From contig OU015568.1 of assembly GCA_907165135.1 (NCBI GenBank), forward strand, positions 12,710,001-12,774,000: a stretch of 64,000 bases of DNA, in the 5' to 3' direction. This document shows, piece by piece, positions 13,408 to 21,029 of this stretch (positions are counted from its first letter, which is position 1; every line of letters starts with the position of its first letter). Both the position numbers and the translations under genes were made by a program. Origin of the DNA: Oikopleura dioica. Taxonomy: Eukaryota; Animalia; Chordata. Under the pieces are notes generated by a model. That model saw nothing but the letters and a program-made list of their open reading frames with translations, was not told the origin of the DNA and made no database searches.

Positions 13408-14618
13408 CTAATGAAGAATCAATTCAGATAATTTATTTTGCCCGTTCGCAACAATAACTCTTTCTTTCGACGCCAAAACCATGTCGTTTATTTTCGTTGA
13501 TAATGTTGTGGACCTATCAAATCTAAAACGAAATTTTCCGGTAACCGAAGCAAATTCGAATGTTAACCTGAATTTGAGGGATCTCTCCTCCGCTTCTGCT
13601 GTCCAAAATTTCACTGCATTATCATTTCCTCCAGAAACAACCAACCATCTATCATTCAAGCTATAATTGCAAATCTTTCCAATTCCGAAACTGTGAGATC
13701 CTTTGAACGCCTGCGTCAGCATCTTATTCGACGACAATTTCCCACATTCGAGTTTGTTCGACACTATCGTTCCGTTTTCACAGCCAGCAAGGACGAATTC
13801 CGGGTCGCTGTTTCGCAGAATTGAAATCGTATGTACTTGAAGATTGTGATTTAGAGAATTGAATTGAAGAACAAACCTAGCGGTGGGGAAACATTCACTC
13901 TCGTCTCAGTTGATTCTTCGCGAATTTCATTTTTAAATTGCGACACGTCGAGCGTTTTGACGCACTTTTGCTGGTCTACTCGCCACGTTCTGATTGACTG
14001 ATCGGACGAAGCCGAGGTAAGAATCTGATCAGTCGTCCATTCTACCGCAGTCGCTAAGTTCTCGTGCTTTGCGCGAAATGCTTTTATTTTCGGTTCTCCT
14101 TCTGCTTTGCTAAACATTTCGCACTCCAAAACTCATTGAAACGCTGTCATTTACCTGACATCAGCAACTCTGATTCTACCGTCGTCATCGGCCGTGGCTA
14201 ATTTTGTCAAGTTCTCGTTCATCGAAATATGGTTGATTTCGTCTCTTCCAATTTTGAACGATCTTGTTGGCTCGATGGCATTTCTCGGGTCTCATTTTCG
14301 ATAAACTAAATATTCCAATTTCTTTCCATACCTACTTGATAGACAATTTCTTCCGCGGCGACGAATATTGTTTCATTCGCCCCCGCACAAATGGATGTGA
14401 TTTCTTCATCTGATATACTCATCGATTGAAGTTTATTTCCATTATCTAATCGAAAAAAAGTAACGTCTCACAGAACAAGAAAATAATTTACCGGAGAAGA
14501 AATGGATGCATCCATCCTCGTCCCCCGCCACAAACACTTTCTTCTCAGCAATATGCGCAACTGCATTGAATCCACTGTCACTAGATCCTGCTGCTGCCCA
14601 CAATCTTACAGTGGCCAT
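13408..14618 (-). CDS. WD40-repeat protein, WDR53-like
   Basis: VFVAGDEDGCIHFF, LATADDDGRIRV, TSASSDQSIRTW and VVSGGNDNAVKFW repeats. Overall layout resembles WDR53. Confidence 0.7.
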
Positions 14619-14719
14619 TCTACAAATTATCCGAAATGTAACATAATACGTGATTTTCAATATTATATTCTGGAAGAGCGGAATTGACATGAATATTTTA
14701 CATTGTACCTATTCAATTT

Positions 14720-16354
14720 TTAGTGATCCATCTTTAGTATATCAGTTAAAATTTCATTATCAGTGAAAAGAGCTTCCCGAGAATTATCGTCTTCGTCATC
14801 AATTTCATTAATTGTTATTCCATTTTCTTCCTTTATTTCAATTTTTATGTCATCTGATTCTCCAATACTGCAGGGAACTGCTAATGCATCAATCGCGGAT
14901 GCCAATGGGAAGGGATTCGATGGGATGACCAATGTTTCGTTCGGGCGTTCTAGCGTTGGAATTGCAGAACTTTCAACAAGGATTTCGTTAGCCATTCGTG
15001 CTTTTAGTCGTCTATCTCTGTTGACCAAAGTTTTTCAACTGCAGTTTGTAGTTACAGCTTGAGTCAATTTTAAGATATATAAAACTCTTCCTGAACCATT
15101 TAGAAACACGAGATTCTCTCATATTCGTGATACTGCAGGTTTTCAGCATCTCTTCTTTCGACGGATACTTATTTTGCAAGTAAAAGCTTTCTAGTTTTTC
15201 CGTCGTCGATATAAATTCCTGAAAGAATTGATGAAAACTAAAGGGCATCTTATAAGTTATAACTAACTTGTGTTAACTCGCATTCAATTATGAGAACTTT
15301 TCCATCGAGTTTGAGGGCAGGTTTTATTTCGACAATGTCGGGAACGGAGATTTCTTTGGCCCACCCGCTCTGGTGGATTTTCATTCCATCTGGCCGAGTG
15401 ATCCATTGATCGCATTTCCCTCTTGGGATAATGAGACCCTTTGAGAAGTCAATTCCAACGCTTAAATCAGTCGGATCATTTTCAAACTCATTCAGATCGA
15501 CTTTGATTATCCATTTGTTCTCCTCGATCGTGGGTTCATTGGGATTTCTCTTCTTTCGTTTATTAACAACTGGTACTTTTATATTAGCAGCTGGAAGGTT
15601 CTCTTCGTTGTCATCTTCATTTCTTTCGGCAACTTCAGCTAGCGCGTCCTTGTATTGTTTTAGAAATTTTCTTGAGGAGCTCGATATATGCTTCCTTTCG
15701 AGCTCATTGACAACCGAATCAAACAATTCTTCGCTCATGTTCATTTCTTGGCGGATATGACTATCGAAAGGATTAAAAGATAAGAATCTACCGAACTTAC
15801 ATCAAGAAAGCCGCAGGAGTGAGAGCTGACTCAGAAAGTCTATTGAGACAAGCTACGCCGCGGACATACTTCCTTGTGGCTCTAGCCCAGCAGTCAACAT
15901 CAGTGCAGTTTTCTAAATGAAACTGGGCGTGTTCAAGGTTTTCCAGCCGAAAATTTTCCACTTTAAAGAAGTCTGGATCTGTCGTCAATGACGATGCTGG
16001 TAGCTTTGAGTACATATACATTTTGGAATAGCACCTTAGCTCTCTATTTTTGTTGCAGGTAATCCGCACCCGGAAGGGCCACTCTGAAAGAAAAAGTTGA
16101 AAAGAAGGTTGATAAAATTGATATTTACCTTCATCGTCGGTTTCTAGGAATAACAAAGGTGGACTCGGACGGTACCATGAACCGTATGGACCGACTCGGA
16201 CTAAGATCACAAAATTCTTCCCGAAGGCTTTGTCTGTTGGTTGAAAGGTGATCAACTGTGGCTTTTCTATCGTCCCTATTTGGGGTAACGCGTCAAACTC
16301 TTCCTTCGACGGGGGCTTGTGTAGTTTAATTGAAAGGTTTTTCAAAAAATCCAT
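14720..16354 (-). CDS. Cluster gene A: unknown N-terminal region + alpha-crystallin(HSP20)-like domain + homeodomain + acidic tail
   Basis: ACD-like WIIKVDL..PTDLSV..IIPRGK..RPDG..WAKEISVPDIV..LKLDGKVLIIEC (15274-15513). Homeodomain KLESFYLQNKYPSKEEMLKTCSITNMRESRVSKWFR|DRRLK, joined by a GA-AG intron. Confidence 0.7.
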
Positions 16355-16747
16355 TTCAAAAGTGCCTCTTTCAACTGTTTTGCTAAGGGGTGTATTTTGC
16401 GAAATGCGACGCGCGGCTGGGTTGGCGCAAATGAAGTTTGGCGTAATTGATTAGCGCGCGTGGGTGGGATCAAGCTATTCGTTTCAGGACGGTACACGCT
16501 CTGGTCCGAGCGGGCGATTAATGAATTCAATTATTCACGCCGTGAAATTCACGGAATCTTGGGGTGAAGAATTCTAACTATTAAAAACAACTCCAGGTAT
16601 TTAACATTAACTTAACATTTTCATAACACGCATTAAAACGATTATTTTTAAGCATTTCTTATATATTGTAATCTTGGCAGAGGGAGAGTGTACAAGTTTC
16701 AATGTGCAATTGGTATAATAAGGACAGTTTTATTCCAGTAATAGTCT

Positions 16748-18288
16748 TCATTCGTCCATAGAATCATCCATAGCCCCAATCGCTTCCGTAAGGGGGCGGT
16801 CATCATCTTGATCGGAAAATGATTCAGTTTTTACTTCATCATCAATCTCCAAGATTGTCACTCCATCATCACCTTCATCTTCGAGCACTTCTATCTTCAC
16901 GCTATCGGCCTCTTTTGATGAAGGCTCTACGATTGTACTCGTATTTGGTAGCTCCAATTTCTCATTTGTCATTCTAGCGATTCTACGTCGCCCTCTTTTC
17001 AACGGATTTAAAAATCATTCCCGATCAAATTTAAATTTTCAAAAAGAAACAAGAAGAAATCCGTTCCTGAACCACGCCCAGACCACCTTCTCAAGCAATC
17101 CAGTTTTGCTGCAGATGTTAATGATTTTCTCTTTATCTGGAAAATTGTTCTCGGCGAAGAACTCTTCGAGAATCATCTTTTTCTTGTCGGTTATTGTTAC
17201 TCCATCGTCCGCTTGGATGGTGGTCCGCTTCATTGCTCGCTGTTGGAACCAATTGATAATGTGTGCTCTACTTTTATTCAGCATTGATGTTAATTTTTCT
17301 ATTTCGTGCTCCGAAAGAGTGTTATCGTAGTTATTATAGCTCGCTTCCAGGACAGATTCTTCTTCGGGAGTGAACAAGGATTTGGGTTGATTTCCTGGGG
17401 TGACAACAAGTGGGACTTGGTAACCGATCGGAGAGGAAAAAGGCGCGTTCGGATTTCGAGGGATTCCAACTTTGAGACCCTCGGAAGCAATTGGAAGGAC
17501 AGCAGAAGGGCTAAAAGCTCCTCCCTCGCCTGCTTCGACGACTTTGAGAGCTTGTCCAGAAGAGTTGGGTTCGTTGTTGATTGAATTGTCGGGTTGCTTG
17601 ATTGCTTGAAATTCCTGAAGATAAATTAAGAGCTTATTTTTTTCGAAACTTACGGGCTTGAGTTCGCATTCGATTTTCAAAATTTTACCCTGAAGCTTGA
17701 TCGATGGCTTGATCTGGACAATGTCTGGGATTTGAATTTCCTTCGACCAGGCAGTCGAAGAGCTGACTTTAACGCCATCTGGTCGAACGATTGTCTGTGC
17801 GTATTTTCCTTGGGGAATGATGAGTTTCTTTGTTAGGTCGACTCCGACGCGGATGTCCGACGGTTCTGTTGGCAGTTCGGTGAGATCTACGGAGGCAGTC
17901 CAGATGTTGCCGCTGATCGTTGGTTGAAGGATGTTTTTGGGTCTGTAAGGTAGGTTCATGTGAAGTGGGGTTTTCGCTTTGAAATCATCTTCAGATATTT
18001 CACTGAAAAAATGAATAAGGATCGGAAAATCAAAGTAGAGACTAAGGGTAATGCAAAAATCATGGAATTGATCACCCATGTAACACACCTAGCATTTTTG
18101 GAAAAGGGACAGGATTCTCCGAAAAAGTAGAATCTTTTTACAACCTCCTTTTTATGAGCTCTCGGGTTGTAATAGACAAGTTCGAAACCCCTGCTTTCTA
18201 AGCCAGGCTTCTTGACAGATTCTTCAAGAAGAACTTTTATTTTTTTCAATTTCTTCGAAAACCATTTCATTGAGTTTCGTTCTTCCAT
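16748..18288 (-). CDS. Cluster gene B: N-terminal module + alpha-crystallin-like domain + two homeodomains + acidic tail
   Basis: ACD-like WTASVDL..PSDIRV..IPQGKY..RPDG..WSKEIQIPDIV..KLQGKILKIEC (17660-17902). HD1 FTPEEESVLEASY..IINWFQQRAMK; HD2 KMILEEFFAENNFPDKE..VWAWFR|GRRR. Confidence 0.75.
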
Positions 18289-18448
18289 CGATAAAAACAG
18301 TGAACAGTTCTTAGAAAAGAATCAAAGCTACTAATTAAAATGTGGCGTTGAAGTTCGCCACCCCTGGCGAATTTGGAAACCCCCTCTGACTGGCTACCGT
18401 AGAGTAGGAGAGAACGCCTACTCGTGCTGATTCTTCATCAAGGCACTC

Positions 18449-19133
18449 TTACTCGATTTGTTTAAATATGACATTAGAAGGCCGCTGATCATCATCTTGA
18501 TCGGAAACTGTCTCAATTTTGATCTCATCTTCTCCATCAAAAATCTCGATCCCCTCACACTCCTCAACTACTGCAAATGCGTCGTTGGAAGGTGTTGGCG
18601 CCTGAGAAAGAAAACGGGGGAAGGATGCGTTGCGTTGTGCTGATCTTTCCGCGTTTTCTTCAGCTCGTTTTTGGCGCCTTCGTTCGGCTTTTCGTTTCAG
18701 TCTTTCAGGTCGATTTTGCGCCAACAATAATTGATCGGGGTCAGCCCTTCGTAGGTAGCCCTGGCTGGTCCCCGAAAGTTCAACTGATTTTCGGATTGTG
18801 TCGCGGTTCTTCCAAATTGATCGAACTGAGTTTTCATTTCGCCCAAGTGCTCGAGCAACGCGTGCAAGACTATCAAAATTTATTTCGTAGACATCAATTC
18901 TGAATTCTTTCAAAATACCTGTAACGATGAGTGCGCGAATTTTCTTCCAATGTTTCGATAATTTGCATACGTTCAGCTAACGTAGTCGTCTGTGCTCTAT
19001 TCTCTGGTTTCTTGCGAGTTTTACGAACTCGAGGAGTCACATCATTTTTCTCTTTCACCTTGGGTAATACCAAAGCCGAAATACTTTCGACTTCGACGGA
19101 GATGTCGCCCTGGTCTGTTGTCTTCTTCTCCAT
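18449..19133 (-). CDS. Pipsqueak/CENP-B-type helix-turn-helix protein (2 exons)
   Basis: TTTLAERMQIIETLEE..|SLARVARALGRNENSVRSIWKNRDTIRKSV after a 50-nt GT-AG intron. Acidic tail IKIETVSDQDDDQRP is shared with gene B. Confidence 0.7.
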
Positions 19134-19204
19134 TTTATTTAAAAACTTATTATTTACCCGTTAAAATCGTATCCCTCTGACTCATTTTTAACAATCGCCG
19201 GTGG

Positions 19205-19245
19205 CCAATAATCGATTACGAGGCCGCCATCCCGCCCCCATTGGT
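19205..19245 (-). promoter_or_regulatory. Putative promoter (CCAAT boxes and GC box) upstream of the psq-HTH ORF
   Basis: CCAAT in both orientations flanking GGGGCGGG, about 70-110 nt upstream of the ATG at 19133. Confidence 0.35.
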
Positions 19246-19279
19246 CCGTTAACAAGGGCACCCGTTAACACTAACTTAC

Positions 19280-20453
19280 CTTTCACTTTTCTTTGAGACG
19301 GGACACAACTCGCCGAGAAAATAGAATCTTTGAAGTGTCTTTTTACATCTGCCTTTTGGGTGATGATAAATGAGCTCAAAGCCGCGATCGTCGAAGCCTT
19401 TTTGCTTGATGCATTTCTCGAGAAGGGTTTTGGCTCTGTTGAATCGCTTGTAAAAAGCGCTATAGCTAGGGAAACTCGATGAAAAATGAGCTTTCTTCTG
19501 GGCTTAGTAGGGGGGACATATAATACAGTTTTAGAAAGCCCAGAAGCTAGGGATCATTTTGACTATTTACAGTAAGGGGTTTGACTCATGCCCTGGGGCG
19601 TTTAGGGACGTCTAAAGTCCCGAAAATTGGGCAATCTCGGAAAAATGGCCGTAACTTTTTTTCTGTCGAGCTTCAGAAAATGCGACTACTACCTACTTGT
19701 AGAGGAGGCTCTGACGAATCAGAATCAGTATAGAAACTCTTTGTCACCCCCCTCTTCTAGGGGCTCTAGAAGCTCTAGAAGTTGAGGAAATCATCCGAAA
19801 ATCGTTACTTTTTTAGGAAAATTGGGTAAAAAAATTTAATTTTTGTCGGAAATAAATTTAGCCTAGTAATAATCGACTTCGCGCCGAAAAAAATACAGTT
19901 TGGGGTCATTCGCGGTCACTTGGGGTCATAAAATGAGAAAAACTAGAATTTCGAGGAAATTAAGTCCGAAACGTATCAAAATGACCCCAAACTGCATTTT
20001 TTTCGACGTGAAGTCGATTCTAACTTGGCTAAGTTGATTTCCGACAAAAATTAAACTTTTTTACCCAATTTTCCTAAAAAAGTAACGATTTTCGGATGAT
20101 TTCCTCAACTTCTAGAGCTTCTAGAGCCCCTAGAAGAGGGGGGTGACAAAGAGTTTCTATACTGATTCTGATTCGTCAGAGCCTCCTCTACAAGTAGGTA
20201 GTAGTCGCATTTTCTGAAGCTCGACAGAAAAAAAGTTACGGCCATTTTTCCGAGATTGCCCAATTTTCGGGACTTTAGACGTCCCTAAACGCCCCAGGGC
20301 ATGAGTCAAACCCCTTACTGTAAATAGTCAAAATGATCCCTAGCTTCTGGATTTTCTAAAACTGTATTATATGACCCCCTACTAAGCCCAGAAAAAAAGC
20401 TCATTTTTCATCGAGTTTCCCTAGCTATAGCGCATATGCTGTTCAACCTCCAT
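19280..20453 (-). CDS. Paralogue of gene B exon 1 (N-terminal module), interrupted by the 957-bp palindromic hAT; pseudogene or spliced
   Basis: Removing the element plus one TSD gives MEVEQHMRYSAFYKRFNRAKTLLEKCIKQKGFDDRGFELIYHHPKGRCKKTLQRFYFLGELCP, collinear with gene B MEERNSMKWFSKKLKKIKVLLEESVKKPGLESRGFELVYYNP..KRFYFFGESCP. The splice donor is at the homologous position. Confidence 0.7.
19467..20423. mobile_element. 957-bp near-perfect palindromic (foldback) hAT-type element, TAGGG termini, 8-bp TSD GCTATAGC
   Basis: Arms of ~445 bp (left arm to ~19910, right arm from ~19980) with a ~69-bp spacer. TSD at 19459-19466 and 20424-20431. Confidence 0.9.
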
Positions 20454-20568
20454 TTTTCGTCACAAAGAATGAATACAAAAAATGAAAGAGAAGGTTTGTC
20501 GCCAGTATTGGCAAATGAGGAAAGCTTATGATTGGGCCGCGGGTTAGATAAGTGCGTTCCCAAAAGCA

Positions 20569-20720
20569 CTGGACTCGGCAACCTGTGTATAAAACCTGAG
20601 TCAGGGTCTGAAAGAGGTGAAATCAAAAGCCGCAGAGATTTTCCATAAGTAATATAAGAGAAATCGCTTCACCTCCTTCAGACCCTGACTCGGGTTTTCT
20701 ACGCAGGTTACCGAGCCCAG
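20569..20720. mobile_element. 152-bp miniature MITE related to the CTGGG hAT family
   Basis: Termini CTGGACTCGGCAACCTG / CTGGGCTCGGTAACCTG resemble the TIR at 11800. ~53-bp imperfect IR. Degenerate flanks CAAAAGCA / CAAAAAAA. Confidence 0.75.
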
Positions 20721-20801
20721 CAAAAAAATATCCAGAAAAAACTTGACACGACAAATAACATTCAGGTGATAAAATAATGAAAATAAGTGTAATCAATTGA
20801 C

Positions 20802-21029
20802 TTACTCATTGTTGTCGATTTCTCTCTCAACAAAGTCTTTGCCGACGAATTTGTAAGCAAACGGAGTTCTAACGCTTCTTTTGATCGAATCGGAACCGTC
20901 TGGTAGAAATTGCTTGATGATGATCTTTCTGTCCGTGTAGCCAGGAATCTTGACGAGACCCTCCAGAATTGATTTCGCCTTTGCGAGGGCTTTGCTGAAC
21001 TTGTTCTTCTCTGTATTTCCGATACCCAT
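20802..21029 (-). CDS. Small protein consisting of the cluster N-terminal module alone
   Basis: KNKFSKALAKAKSILEGLVKIPGYTDRKIIIKQFLPDG..FAYKFVG resembles the N-module of gene B and of the copy at 19280-20453. Confidence 0.5.
   Translation of the reverse strand: MGIGNTEKNKFSKALAKAKSILEGLVKIPGYTDRKIIIKQFLPDGSDSIKRSVRTPFAYKFVGKDFVEREIDNNE

Follow-up and report, generated by a model that had tools for sequence, protein, structure and literature searches.

Scrutiny of a 64-kb window (i.e., the whole stretch of DNA that was analysed) from the Okinawan Oikopleura dioica assembly OKI2018_I69 (GCA_907165135.1, contig OU015568.1, with the locus at ~12.72-12.73 Mb) revealed two neighbouring minus-strand genes, referred to as A (ATG at position 15744, stop codon at 14722..14720) and B (ATG at 18288, stop codon at 16750..16748). 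Both are most probably tandem paralogues encoding nuclear DNA-binding proteins, in which an alpha-crystallin domain (ACD) derived from a small heat-shock protein (sHSP) is followed by homeodomains akin to those of ZHX and ZFHX proteins and then by a conserved acidic tail. Their common beta-rich segment (a domain of ~90 residues; 47% identity over 125 residues, E 4e-35) had no further copy elsewhere in the 64-kb window. Both domains are known, whereas their combination, seen here in a chordate model organism, is new, and part of it was already present as an unnamed, automatically annotated model. As the sequence-only reading that had pointed to this locus presumed, no account of an ACD fused to homeodomains was found in the literature searched, nor was any of Oikopleura sHSPs.

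All profile and fold searches were performed with each exon singly. When a two-sequence profile of the A and B domains was used for an exhaustive HMMER search of 1.84 billion protein representatives, 19 proteins were retrieved at E<=1e-3, with E-values of 8e-9 to 1e-3 against sHSPs. Beyond gene A and two orthologue clusters, these matches were mostly proteins of 105-177 amino acids from marine metagenomes and Tara metatranscriptomes, and they included an annotated O. dioica protein from the same chromosome (CAG5089631.1). The gathering score of the Pfam HSP20 family (PF00011) was passed by 10 of the 14 small matches tested, with scores of up to 45 bits. Two further proteins in the list were set aside, i.e., P0018 (a WD40 repeat protein, and as such a false positive) and P0006 (a 2946-residue repeat protein without any Pfam family, which was counted as a false positive). 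The ACD profile matched the latter eight times, each weakly (overall E 1.5e-7); this protein could be made of several ACD repeats, or else be a false positive.

The A/B domain aligned with the sHSPs nearly without gaps over ~90 columns, of which W34, L40, G65-K66, G76, W85, I89, P92, K102 and L108 were invariant or nearly so. The motifs that had previously been aligned by eye in both genes (i.e., W..S.D, GK, DG, W.K..IP..V and L..G.L.IE) turned out to coincide with conserved columns of this sHSP alignment. The most conserved block of the homeodomain-linked ACD itself is RPDG.K...W.KEI.(I/V)PDIV, which corresponds to the beta6+7 edge and the next loop. Moreover, hhalign comparison of the four homeodomain-linked ACDs with 12 sHSPs yielded a probability of 99.1% (E 1.2e-18 over 92 columns), and the 12-sHSP set in turn matched alphaB-crystallin, HSPB8, Hsp16 and Sip1 in the Protein Data Bank (PDB) at E ~1e-7. 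Protein language-model features likewise led to SHSP clusters (score 0.90).

At the level of the fold, the AlphaFold2 model of the gene B ACD exon displayed the beta2-beta9 strand order, with a mean predicted local distance difference test score (pLDDT) of 82.9 that exceeded 90 over residues 30-116. In a Foldseek search against the PDB, the best 50 matches were exclusively ACDs (E from 2e-5, template-modelling (TM) score by target 0.70-0.77), and a shape search of the ESM Atlas exclusively returned HSP20 clusters (TM 0.66-0.69). A search of 48,161 chains with VIA-align, which is independent of Foldseek, ranked sHSPs first as well (Z 10.5-9). In our own reading of the model, the beta5-beta6+7 hairpin of the domain would be short, as it is in the solved metazoan ACDs at the top of the fold searches.

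A number of results nevertheless weigh against such an assignment. Whereas the homeodomain family (PF00046) was matched by both genes, the expected match to PF00011 was not obtained directly, either for A or B (at E<=1) or for the orthologues P0002 and P0003 (at E<=0.1). A profile made of the four homeodomain-linked ACDs alone did not retrieve any sHSP from the PDB, and the AlphaFold input alignment included sHSPs, which makes the model partly dependent on the sHSP link. Because both PF00011 and the four-ACD profile miss it, the connection between this ACD and the sHSPs needs intermediate sequences or structure. In addition, the ACD segment had no match in NCBIfam, phmmer and hmmsearch runs against PDB sequences (with B alone, with A and B, or with the four homeodomain-linked ACDs) gave chance-level matches only, and a word-based homologue search with a 349-residue frame of gene B as query found no homologue.

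The HSP20-like fold is common to ACDs and CS domains, and CS domains were present in the VIA-align list below the sHSPs (Z 8.9 for Sgt1, 8.4 for the PIH1D1 CS domain and 6.4 for p23), as might be expected if the beta-sandwich were a CS/p23-type (PIH1, Sgt1, NudC-like) co-chaperone domain recruiting Hsp90-type machinery rather than dimerising. However, every structural match scoring above the CS domains was an sHSP ACD, the sole significant sequence relatives of the A/B domain were Pfam HSP20 proteins, and neither Pfam CS nor PIH1_CS was matched, which makes a CS-type domain highly improbable. Because the profile, structure and language-model lines converge, the beta-rich domain of A and B is a divergent but genuine ACD, so that the beta-sandwich proposed from the sequence alone was upheld by hhalign, AlphaFold, Foldseek and VIA-align.

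Downstream of the ACD, a single homeodomain had been proposed for gene A and two for gene B, and this agreed with the Pfam PF00046 scores (cut-off 22.9 bits) of 25.1 bits for the gene A exon at 15218..15086 and 61.8 bits over two stretches for gene B (referred to as HD1 and HD2). The gene A homeodomain resembles HD2 (43% identity, E 5e-10) and has ZHX1 and ZHX2 as its best solved relatives, while HD2 is closest in the PDB to the homeodomain of ZFHX3/ATBF1 (E 1.3e-5) and HD1 matched engrailed. Gene B recalls the zinc-finger (ZF) class (ZFHX3/ATBF1, ZHX1-3 and ZEB) in having several homeodomains per chain, and the best PDB matches of HD2 and the gene A homeodomain (ZFHX3, ZHX1/2 and ZEB1) are of this class, albeit weak (E 1e-5 to 1e-2). 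In contrast, the ZF class has neither this N-terminal ACD nor this acidic tail, and no zinc fingers were seen in A or B, none of their exons having a zinc-finger Pfam match.

The third helix of HD2 is canonical (WFRN-G-RRR), with R53 supplied by the predicted last exon. Less favourable to DNA binding are HD1, whose third helix (WFQQRA) has an atypical Gln instead of Asn at position 51, and the gene A homeodomain, in which WFRK is followed by N-RR after a GT-AG splice, leaving one extra residue before the Asn and making the canonical Asn51 hinge on the exact splice. Because of these atypical residues, DNA binding by HD1 and by the gene A homeodomain is uncertain.

Sequence evidence supports the ACD and homeodomains being encoded in one polypeptide in both genes, because of the open frame of gene B, its public model, metagenome open reading frames (ORFs) and the in-frame constraint on gene A. 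Specifically, the ACD, linker, HD1 and HD2 of gene B lie in a single open frame of 349 codons (17039..18088), and at the local base composition the chance of 349 stop-free codons is ~7e-10, or ~4e-6 if only the 204 codons that follow the ACD are counted. The public AUGUSTUS model at this gene (382 amino acids, window 21029..17039) consists of a distal MGIGN exon (74 codons and 2 nt), the ACD exon, and exon 3 up to the stop codon at 17039 (i.e., 74+1+116+191), and it already joins the ACD to the homeodomains, yet names the homeodomain only. In another lineage, the metagenome ORFs P0003, P0021 and P0023 also carry ACD and homeodomain in one frame. As for gene A, its homeodomain exon follows a TTTCAG acceptor and offers no start codon ahead of helix 1, and its introns 1 (after ...ECEL(T/K)(Q/P)) and 2 (after WFR(K/N)) correspond to introns 2 and 3 of gene B in both position and phase. 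When measured against two contigs from two public runs that are ~85% identical to the window with unchanged gene order (L007 and L008), the exons were gapless, whereas the predicted introns were 67-73% identical with indels.

Since operons are common in O. dioica, the ACD and homeodomains might instead be separate operon cistrons, with the fusion an artefact of their tight spacing. Two observations speak for this. The public annotation of gene A (P0001, 164 amino acids) is the ACD ORF alone, continued into intron 1; and four species-labelled RNA runs, mapped onto 14400-19400 at 90% likeness, yielded one partial read, which is no valid test of expression or splicing. As to the tail, the public gene B model deviates from our reading in that it reads through the predicted intron 3 and stops at 17039, before the tail. 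Nevertheless, gene B lacks any stop codon between its ACD and homeodomains, and its first Met codon after the ACD lies inside HD1; the homeodomain exon of gene A has a consensus acceptor and shows in-frame constraint right from its first codon; intron positions and phases are common to A and B; and the public gene B model and the metagenome ORFs join the domains. Separate cistrons are therefore very unlikely, and a single polypeptide carrying ACD and homeodomains remains the preferred interpretation.

The predicted introns within these frames also differ from their surroundings. Intron 1 of gene A is 73% identical to its counterpart in L008, with frame-breaking indels of 7 nt and 1 nt, and reading through it would meet a stop codon in the window and a frame shift in the other lineage (P0035). 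For the in-frame, stop-free intron 2 of gene B, the homologous interval of two more distant metagenome contigs (L002 and L003, one of which from Tara Oceans) is 79% identical between both and differs by a 7-nt indel, which marks it as a genuine intron in these contigs. The predicted intron 3 of gene B is 68% identical to L007 with a 3-nt gap, as opposed to 86-91% identity in the flanking exons. Its prediction as a GA-AG intron is based on this drop in conservation, on the constrained tail behind it and on the match of that tail to the tails of gene A, gene C (see below), L002 and L003. Non-canonical introns make up 11% in OKI2018_I69 (PMC8008620). At the same site, L007 (~100-165) reads GGGT, so that a GT is available where the window has the GA donor, and its 66-nt interval is open and in frame, meaning that the tail would be reached in L007 by either splicing or read-through.

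The acidic tail noted behind the homeodomains proved to be homologous among A, B, gene C and the metagenome orthologues, including L002 and L003 (alignment A6), with the gene B tail exon finding the L002 tail by tblastn at E 6e-12. The tails have in common the motifs (V/I)KIE(V/I), G(V/I)(T/E)I and (I/V)K(I/T)E, followed by SD(Q/E)DDD, and gene A contains I/V-x-I/V motifs in this region. These tail motifs resemble the C-terminal I-P-I-E motif of related sHSPs. Gene C (19133..18449, minus strand), which is without a public model and sits in the first intron of the public 382-residue gene B model, has the tail without an ACD or homeodomain. Its designation as a helix-turn-helix (HTH) protein was dropped, since the HTH-like region had been spotted by eye only and was not borne out by searches of Pfam and the PDB.

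Comparison of the coding sequences with L007 and L008 showed purifying selection on all exons of gene A and on the tail of gene B. The ratio of nonsynonymous to synonymous substitution (dN/dS) was 0.02 in the homeodomain exon of gene A (with a proportion of synonymous differences, pS, of 0.68) and 0.11 in its tail exon, both gapless against the two contigs, and 0.18 in the gene B tail exon, gapless against L007 (see Table 1 for exon 1 of gene A). Further away, L002 and L003 carry, in order, an N-module exon, an MGIGN-type exon, an ACD (56-59% identical to that of gene B), three homeodomain-like segments and the tail. The four homeodomain-linked ACDs formed one split (support 100/98) on a long stem of a maximum-likelihood tree, which would fit an sHSP ACD having been recruited once. 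No combination of this ACD type with a homeodomain was found outside Oikopleura-like contigs in the profile search of 1.84 billion proteins. These data support A and B as a lineage-specific family, as the duplication had suggested.

The evolution of O. dioica is very fast, and the atypical homeodomains (Gln51 in HD1 and WFRK in gene A), the long branch of gene A in the ACD tree (1.02) and the near-lack of reads from the RNA runs, which did not map, might be taken to mean that A and B are functionless duplicates in decay or rapid drift, and their architecture accidental. This would be hard to reconcile with a dN/dS of 0.02-0.18 on all gene A exons and the gene B tail relative to a lineage with a pS of ~0.4, with exons devoid of the stop codons and frame-shifting indels that the introns do carry, or with the retention of the architecture in lineages so far from the window that synonymous sites are saturated (the gene B ACD and its L002 orthologue having 59% amino-acid identity, a proportion of nonsynonymous differences, pN, of 0.245 and a pS of 0.74). 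Accidental, functionless duplicates are thus scarcely credible, and we retain A and B as members of a constrained family.

Table 1. Exons, predicted introns and associated reading frames of genes A and B (positions in the window).
Feature	Position	Strand	Basis or remark
Gene A exon 1: start codon, N-terminal helical/basic linker, ACD core (~15519..15268) ending ...IIECELTQ	15268..15744	-	ORF; dN/dS 0.02, pS 0.45, gapless against L007/L008
Gene A intron 1 (predicted): 49 nt, GTTAGT...TTTCAG, phase 0	15219..15267	-	Site matches gene B intron 2
Gene A homeodomain exon: EFISTTEKLESFYLQNKYPSKEEMLKTCSITNMRESRVSKWFRK	15086..15218	-	Pfam PF00046; homologous to gene B HD2
Gene A intron 2 (predicted): 70 nt, GT...AG, phase 1, inside helix 3 after WFRK	15016..15085	-	70-72% identity, 6-nt gap
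Gene A last exon: basic end of homeodomain (NRRLKARM) and acidic tail (IKIEIKEE, GITINEIDDEDD), stop codon 14722..14720	14720..15015	-	ORF
Orphan ORF of 185 codons lying between B and A; 45-nt intron (16128..16084)	15797..16354	-	Unannotated
Gene B distal candidate alternative first exon (MGIGN...), phase-2 GTAAGT donor	20806..21029	-	First exon of public 382-residue model
Gene B proximal first exon: ~65-residue N-module (helix and beta-hairpin), donor AG/GTGTGT, phase 2	18089..18288	-	ORF
Gene B exon 2: ACD, core WTASVDL...KILKIECELKP	17654..18002	-	Profile and fold evidence
Gene B intron 2 (predicted): 39 nt, GTAAGT...CTTCAG, phase 0, in frame, stop-free	17615..17653	-
Gene B exon 3: ~75-residue low-complexity linker, HD1 and HD2	17062..17614	-	Pfam PF00046
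Gene B HD1	~17398..17228	-	Within exon 3
Gene B HD2, ...VVWAWFRN	~17212..17063	-	Within exon 3
Gene B intron 3 (predicted): 69 nt, non-canonical GA...AG, phase 1	16993..17061	-	Same position as gene A intron 2
Gene B last exon: basic end of HD2 (G-RRRIARM) and acidic tail VKIEVLEDEGDDGVTILEIDDEVKTESFSDQDDDRPLTEA, stop codon 16750..16748	16748..16992	-	ORF

At its 5' end, gene B has two candidate first exons (18288..18089 and 21029..20806; Table 1), which are paralogous, ATG-bearing and of phase 2, and are both kept in L002. A further paralogue of the proximal N-module exon lies at 19500..19282 (44% identity, E 1e-15), and the L002 orthologue of the proximal exon is 46% identical to it. The N-module consists of a Lys-rich helix and a beta-hairpin (AlphaFold2 pLDDT 76), and had no Pfam match and no significant fold match; a MADS/MEF2-like helix-plus-hairpin was considered and not accepted (probability <=0.14). 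In L002, two N-module exons stand in tandem (577-812 and 952-1175) just upstream of the ACD exon. In L002 to L005, the ACD exon is directly preceded by an orthologue of the distal MGIGN exon, which has a dN/dS of 0.05 between L002 and L003. The tandem of ATG-bearing N-module exons suggests alternative first exons or promoters. The copy at 19500..19282 is without an in-frame ATG, and directly upstream of it lies a foldback element (~19560..20330) with identical ORF translations on opposite strands (19581-19785 and 20105-20309), which may have disrupted this copy.

The 185-codon ORF between B and A is under strong purifying selection (dN/dS 0.05-0.11 against L007 and L008), with no Pfam or Atlas match and no homologue beyond the same lineage. 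It ends in a conserved AT/GTAAGT, from which a 40-nt intron (15800..15761) would join it in frame to gene A, entering 16 nt upstream of the ATG at 15744. As such, this ORF could be the N-terminus of gene A or, equally, a separate upstream cistron. A PIH1-N plus CS protein composed of this ORF and the beta-sandwich was also considered and rejected, given that no Pfam PIH1 or CS match was found and that sHSPs outranked CS domains. On the other side of gene A, in the region downstream of 14612 (~100 nt past its stop codon), a WD40-repeat gene (public 579-residue model) comes next on the minus strand, ~500 nt from that stop codon.

Together, A and B might work as follows. The ACD would have been drawn from the larvacean sHSP repertoire, and would serve as a homo- or heterodimerisation module pairing the homeodomains on DNA, with A/A, B/B and A/B as plausible pairs. 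Metazoan ACDs pair through their beta6+7 edge. The acidic tail, studded with hydrophobic residues, may act as an activation domain; alternatively or additionally, and more speculatively, its I-x-I-like motifs could dock into the beta4/beta8 groove of the ACD, in cis or in trans. By analogy, plant HD-ZIP proteins and HNF1 also have a dimerisation domain beside the homeodomain and bind paired sites, although their dimeriser is a leucine zipper or helical bundle, whereas that of A and B would be a beta-sandwich chaperone domain following the same logic.

With respect to the metazoan sHSPs (HSPB; PF00011), including the plankton sHSPs of 105-177 amino acids and CAG5089631.1, A and B have the same ACD beta-sandwich with, as modelled, a short beta5-beta6+7 hairpin, and a common signature (i.e., W..(V/I)(D/N)L..(L/I)PT.P.D(I/L).V..D ... 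GK ... G.K..S...W.K.I.(I/V)P..V ... K ... L.I). Unlike sHSPs, they are not stand-alone proteins of 12-43 kDa, since an intron, a linker and homeodomains come after the ACD. They also lack the C-terminal I-P-I extension that directly follows the ACD in related sHSPs, having I/V-K-I-E motifs in the distal tail only, and they read IIPQGK where sHSPs have VSGKSE. ACDs are generally known as the core of sHSP chaperones. A role of ACDs outside classic chaperoning is also found in plants, where ACD proteins are part of DNA- or chromatin-reading complexes that regulate transcription (IDM2/IDM3 with MBD7, and ACD15 with MBD5/6; PMC5462541, PMC11694752). In those complexes, however, ACD and DNA reader are separate polypeptides, the reader is an MBD instead of a homeodomain, and the lineages are unrelated.

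A broader scenario, which we regard as unlikely, is that larvaceans have come to use the sHSP ACD generally in transcription factors, as a module for oligomerisation or for sensing stress. Such a family would be built from four interchangeable parts, i.e., the N-module, the ACD, a homeodomain or HTH cassette, and the acidic tail with its I-x-I motifs, with gene C (tail without ACD) as a further member. Assembly would proceed via ACD dimers and tail-in-groove contacts, and temperature or proteotoxic stress would alter the oligomeric state and hence DNA binding.

Finally, the locus calls for a correction of the annotation, since Pfam misses the ACD, the public model of gene A covers the ACD exon only, that of gene B is tail-less, and gene C and the 185-codon ORF are unmodelled. 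If the ACD indeed pairs or gates the homeodomains, A and B would represent a new route to dimeric, possibly stress-responsive transcription factors. If true, they would also provide a clear case of domain shuffling giving rise to new regulators in the fastest-evolving chordate genome.

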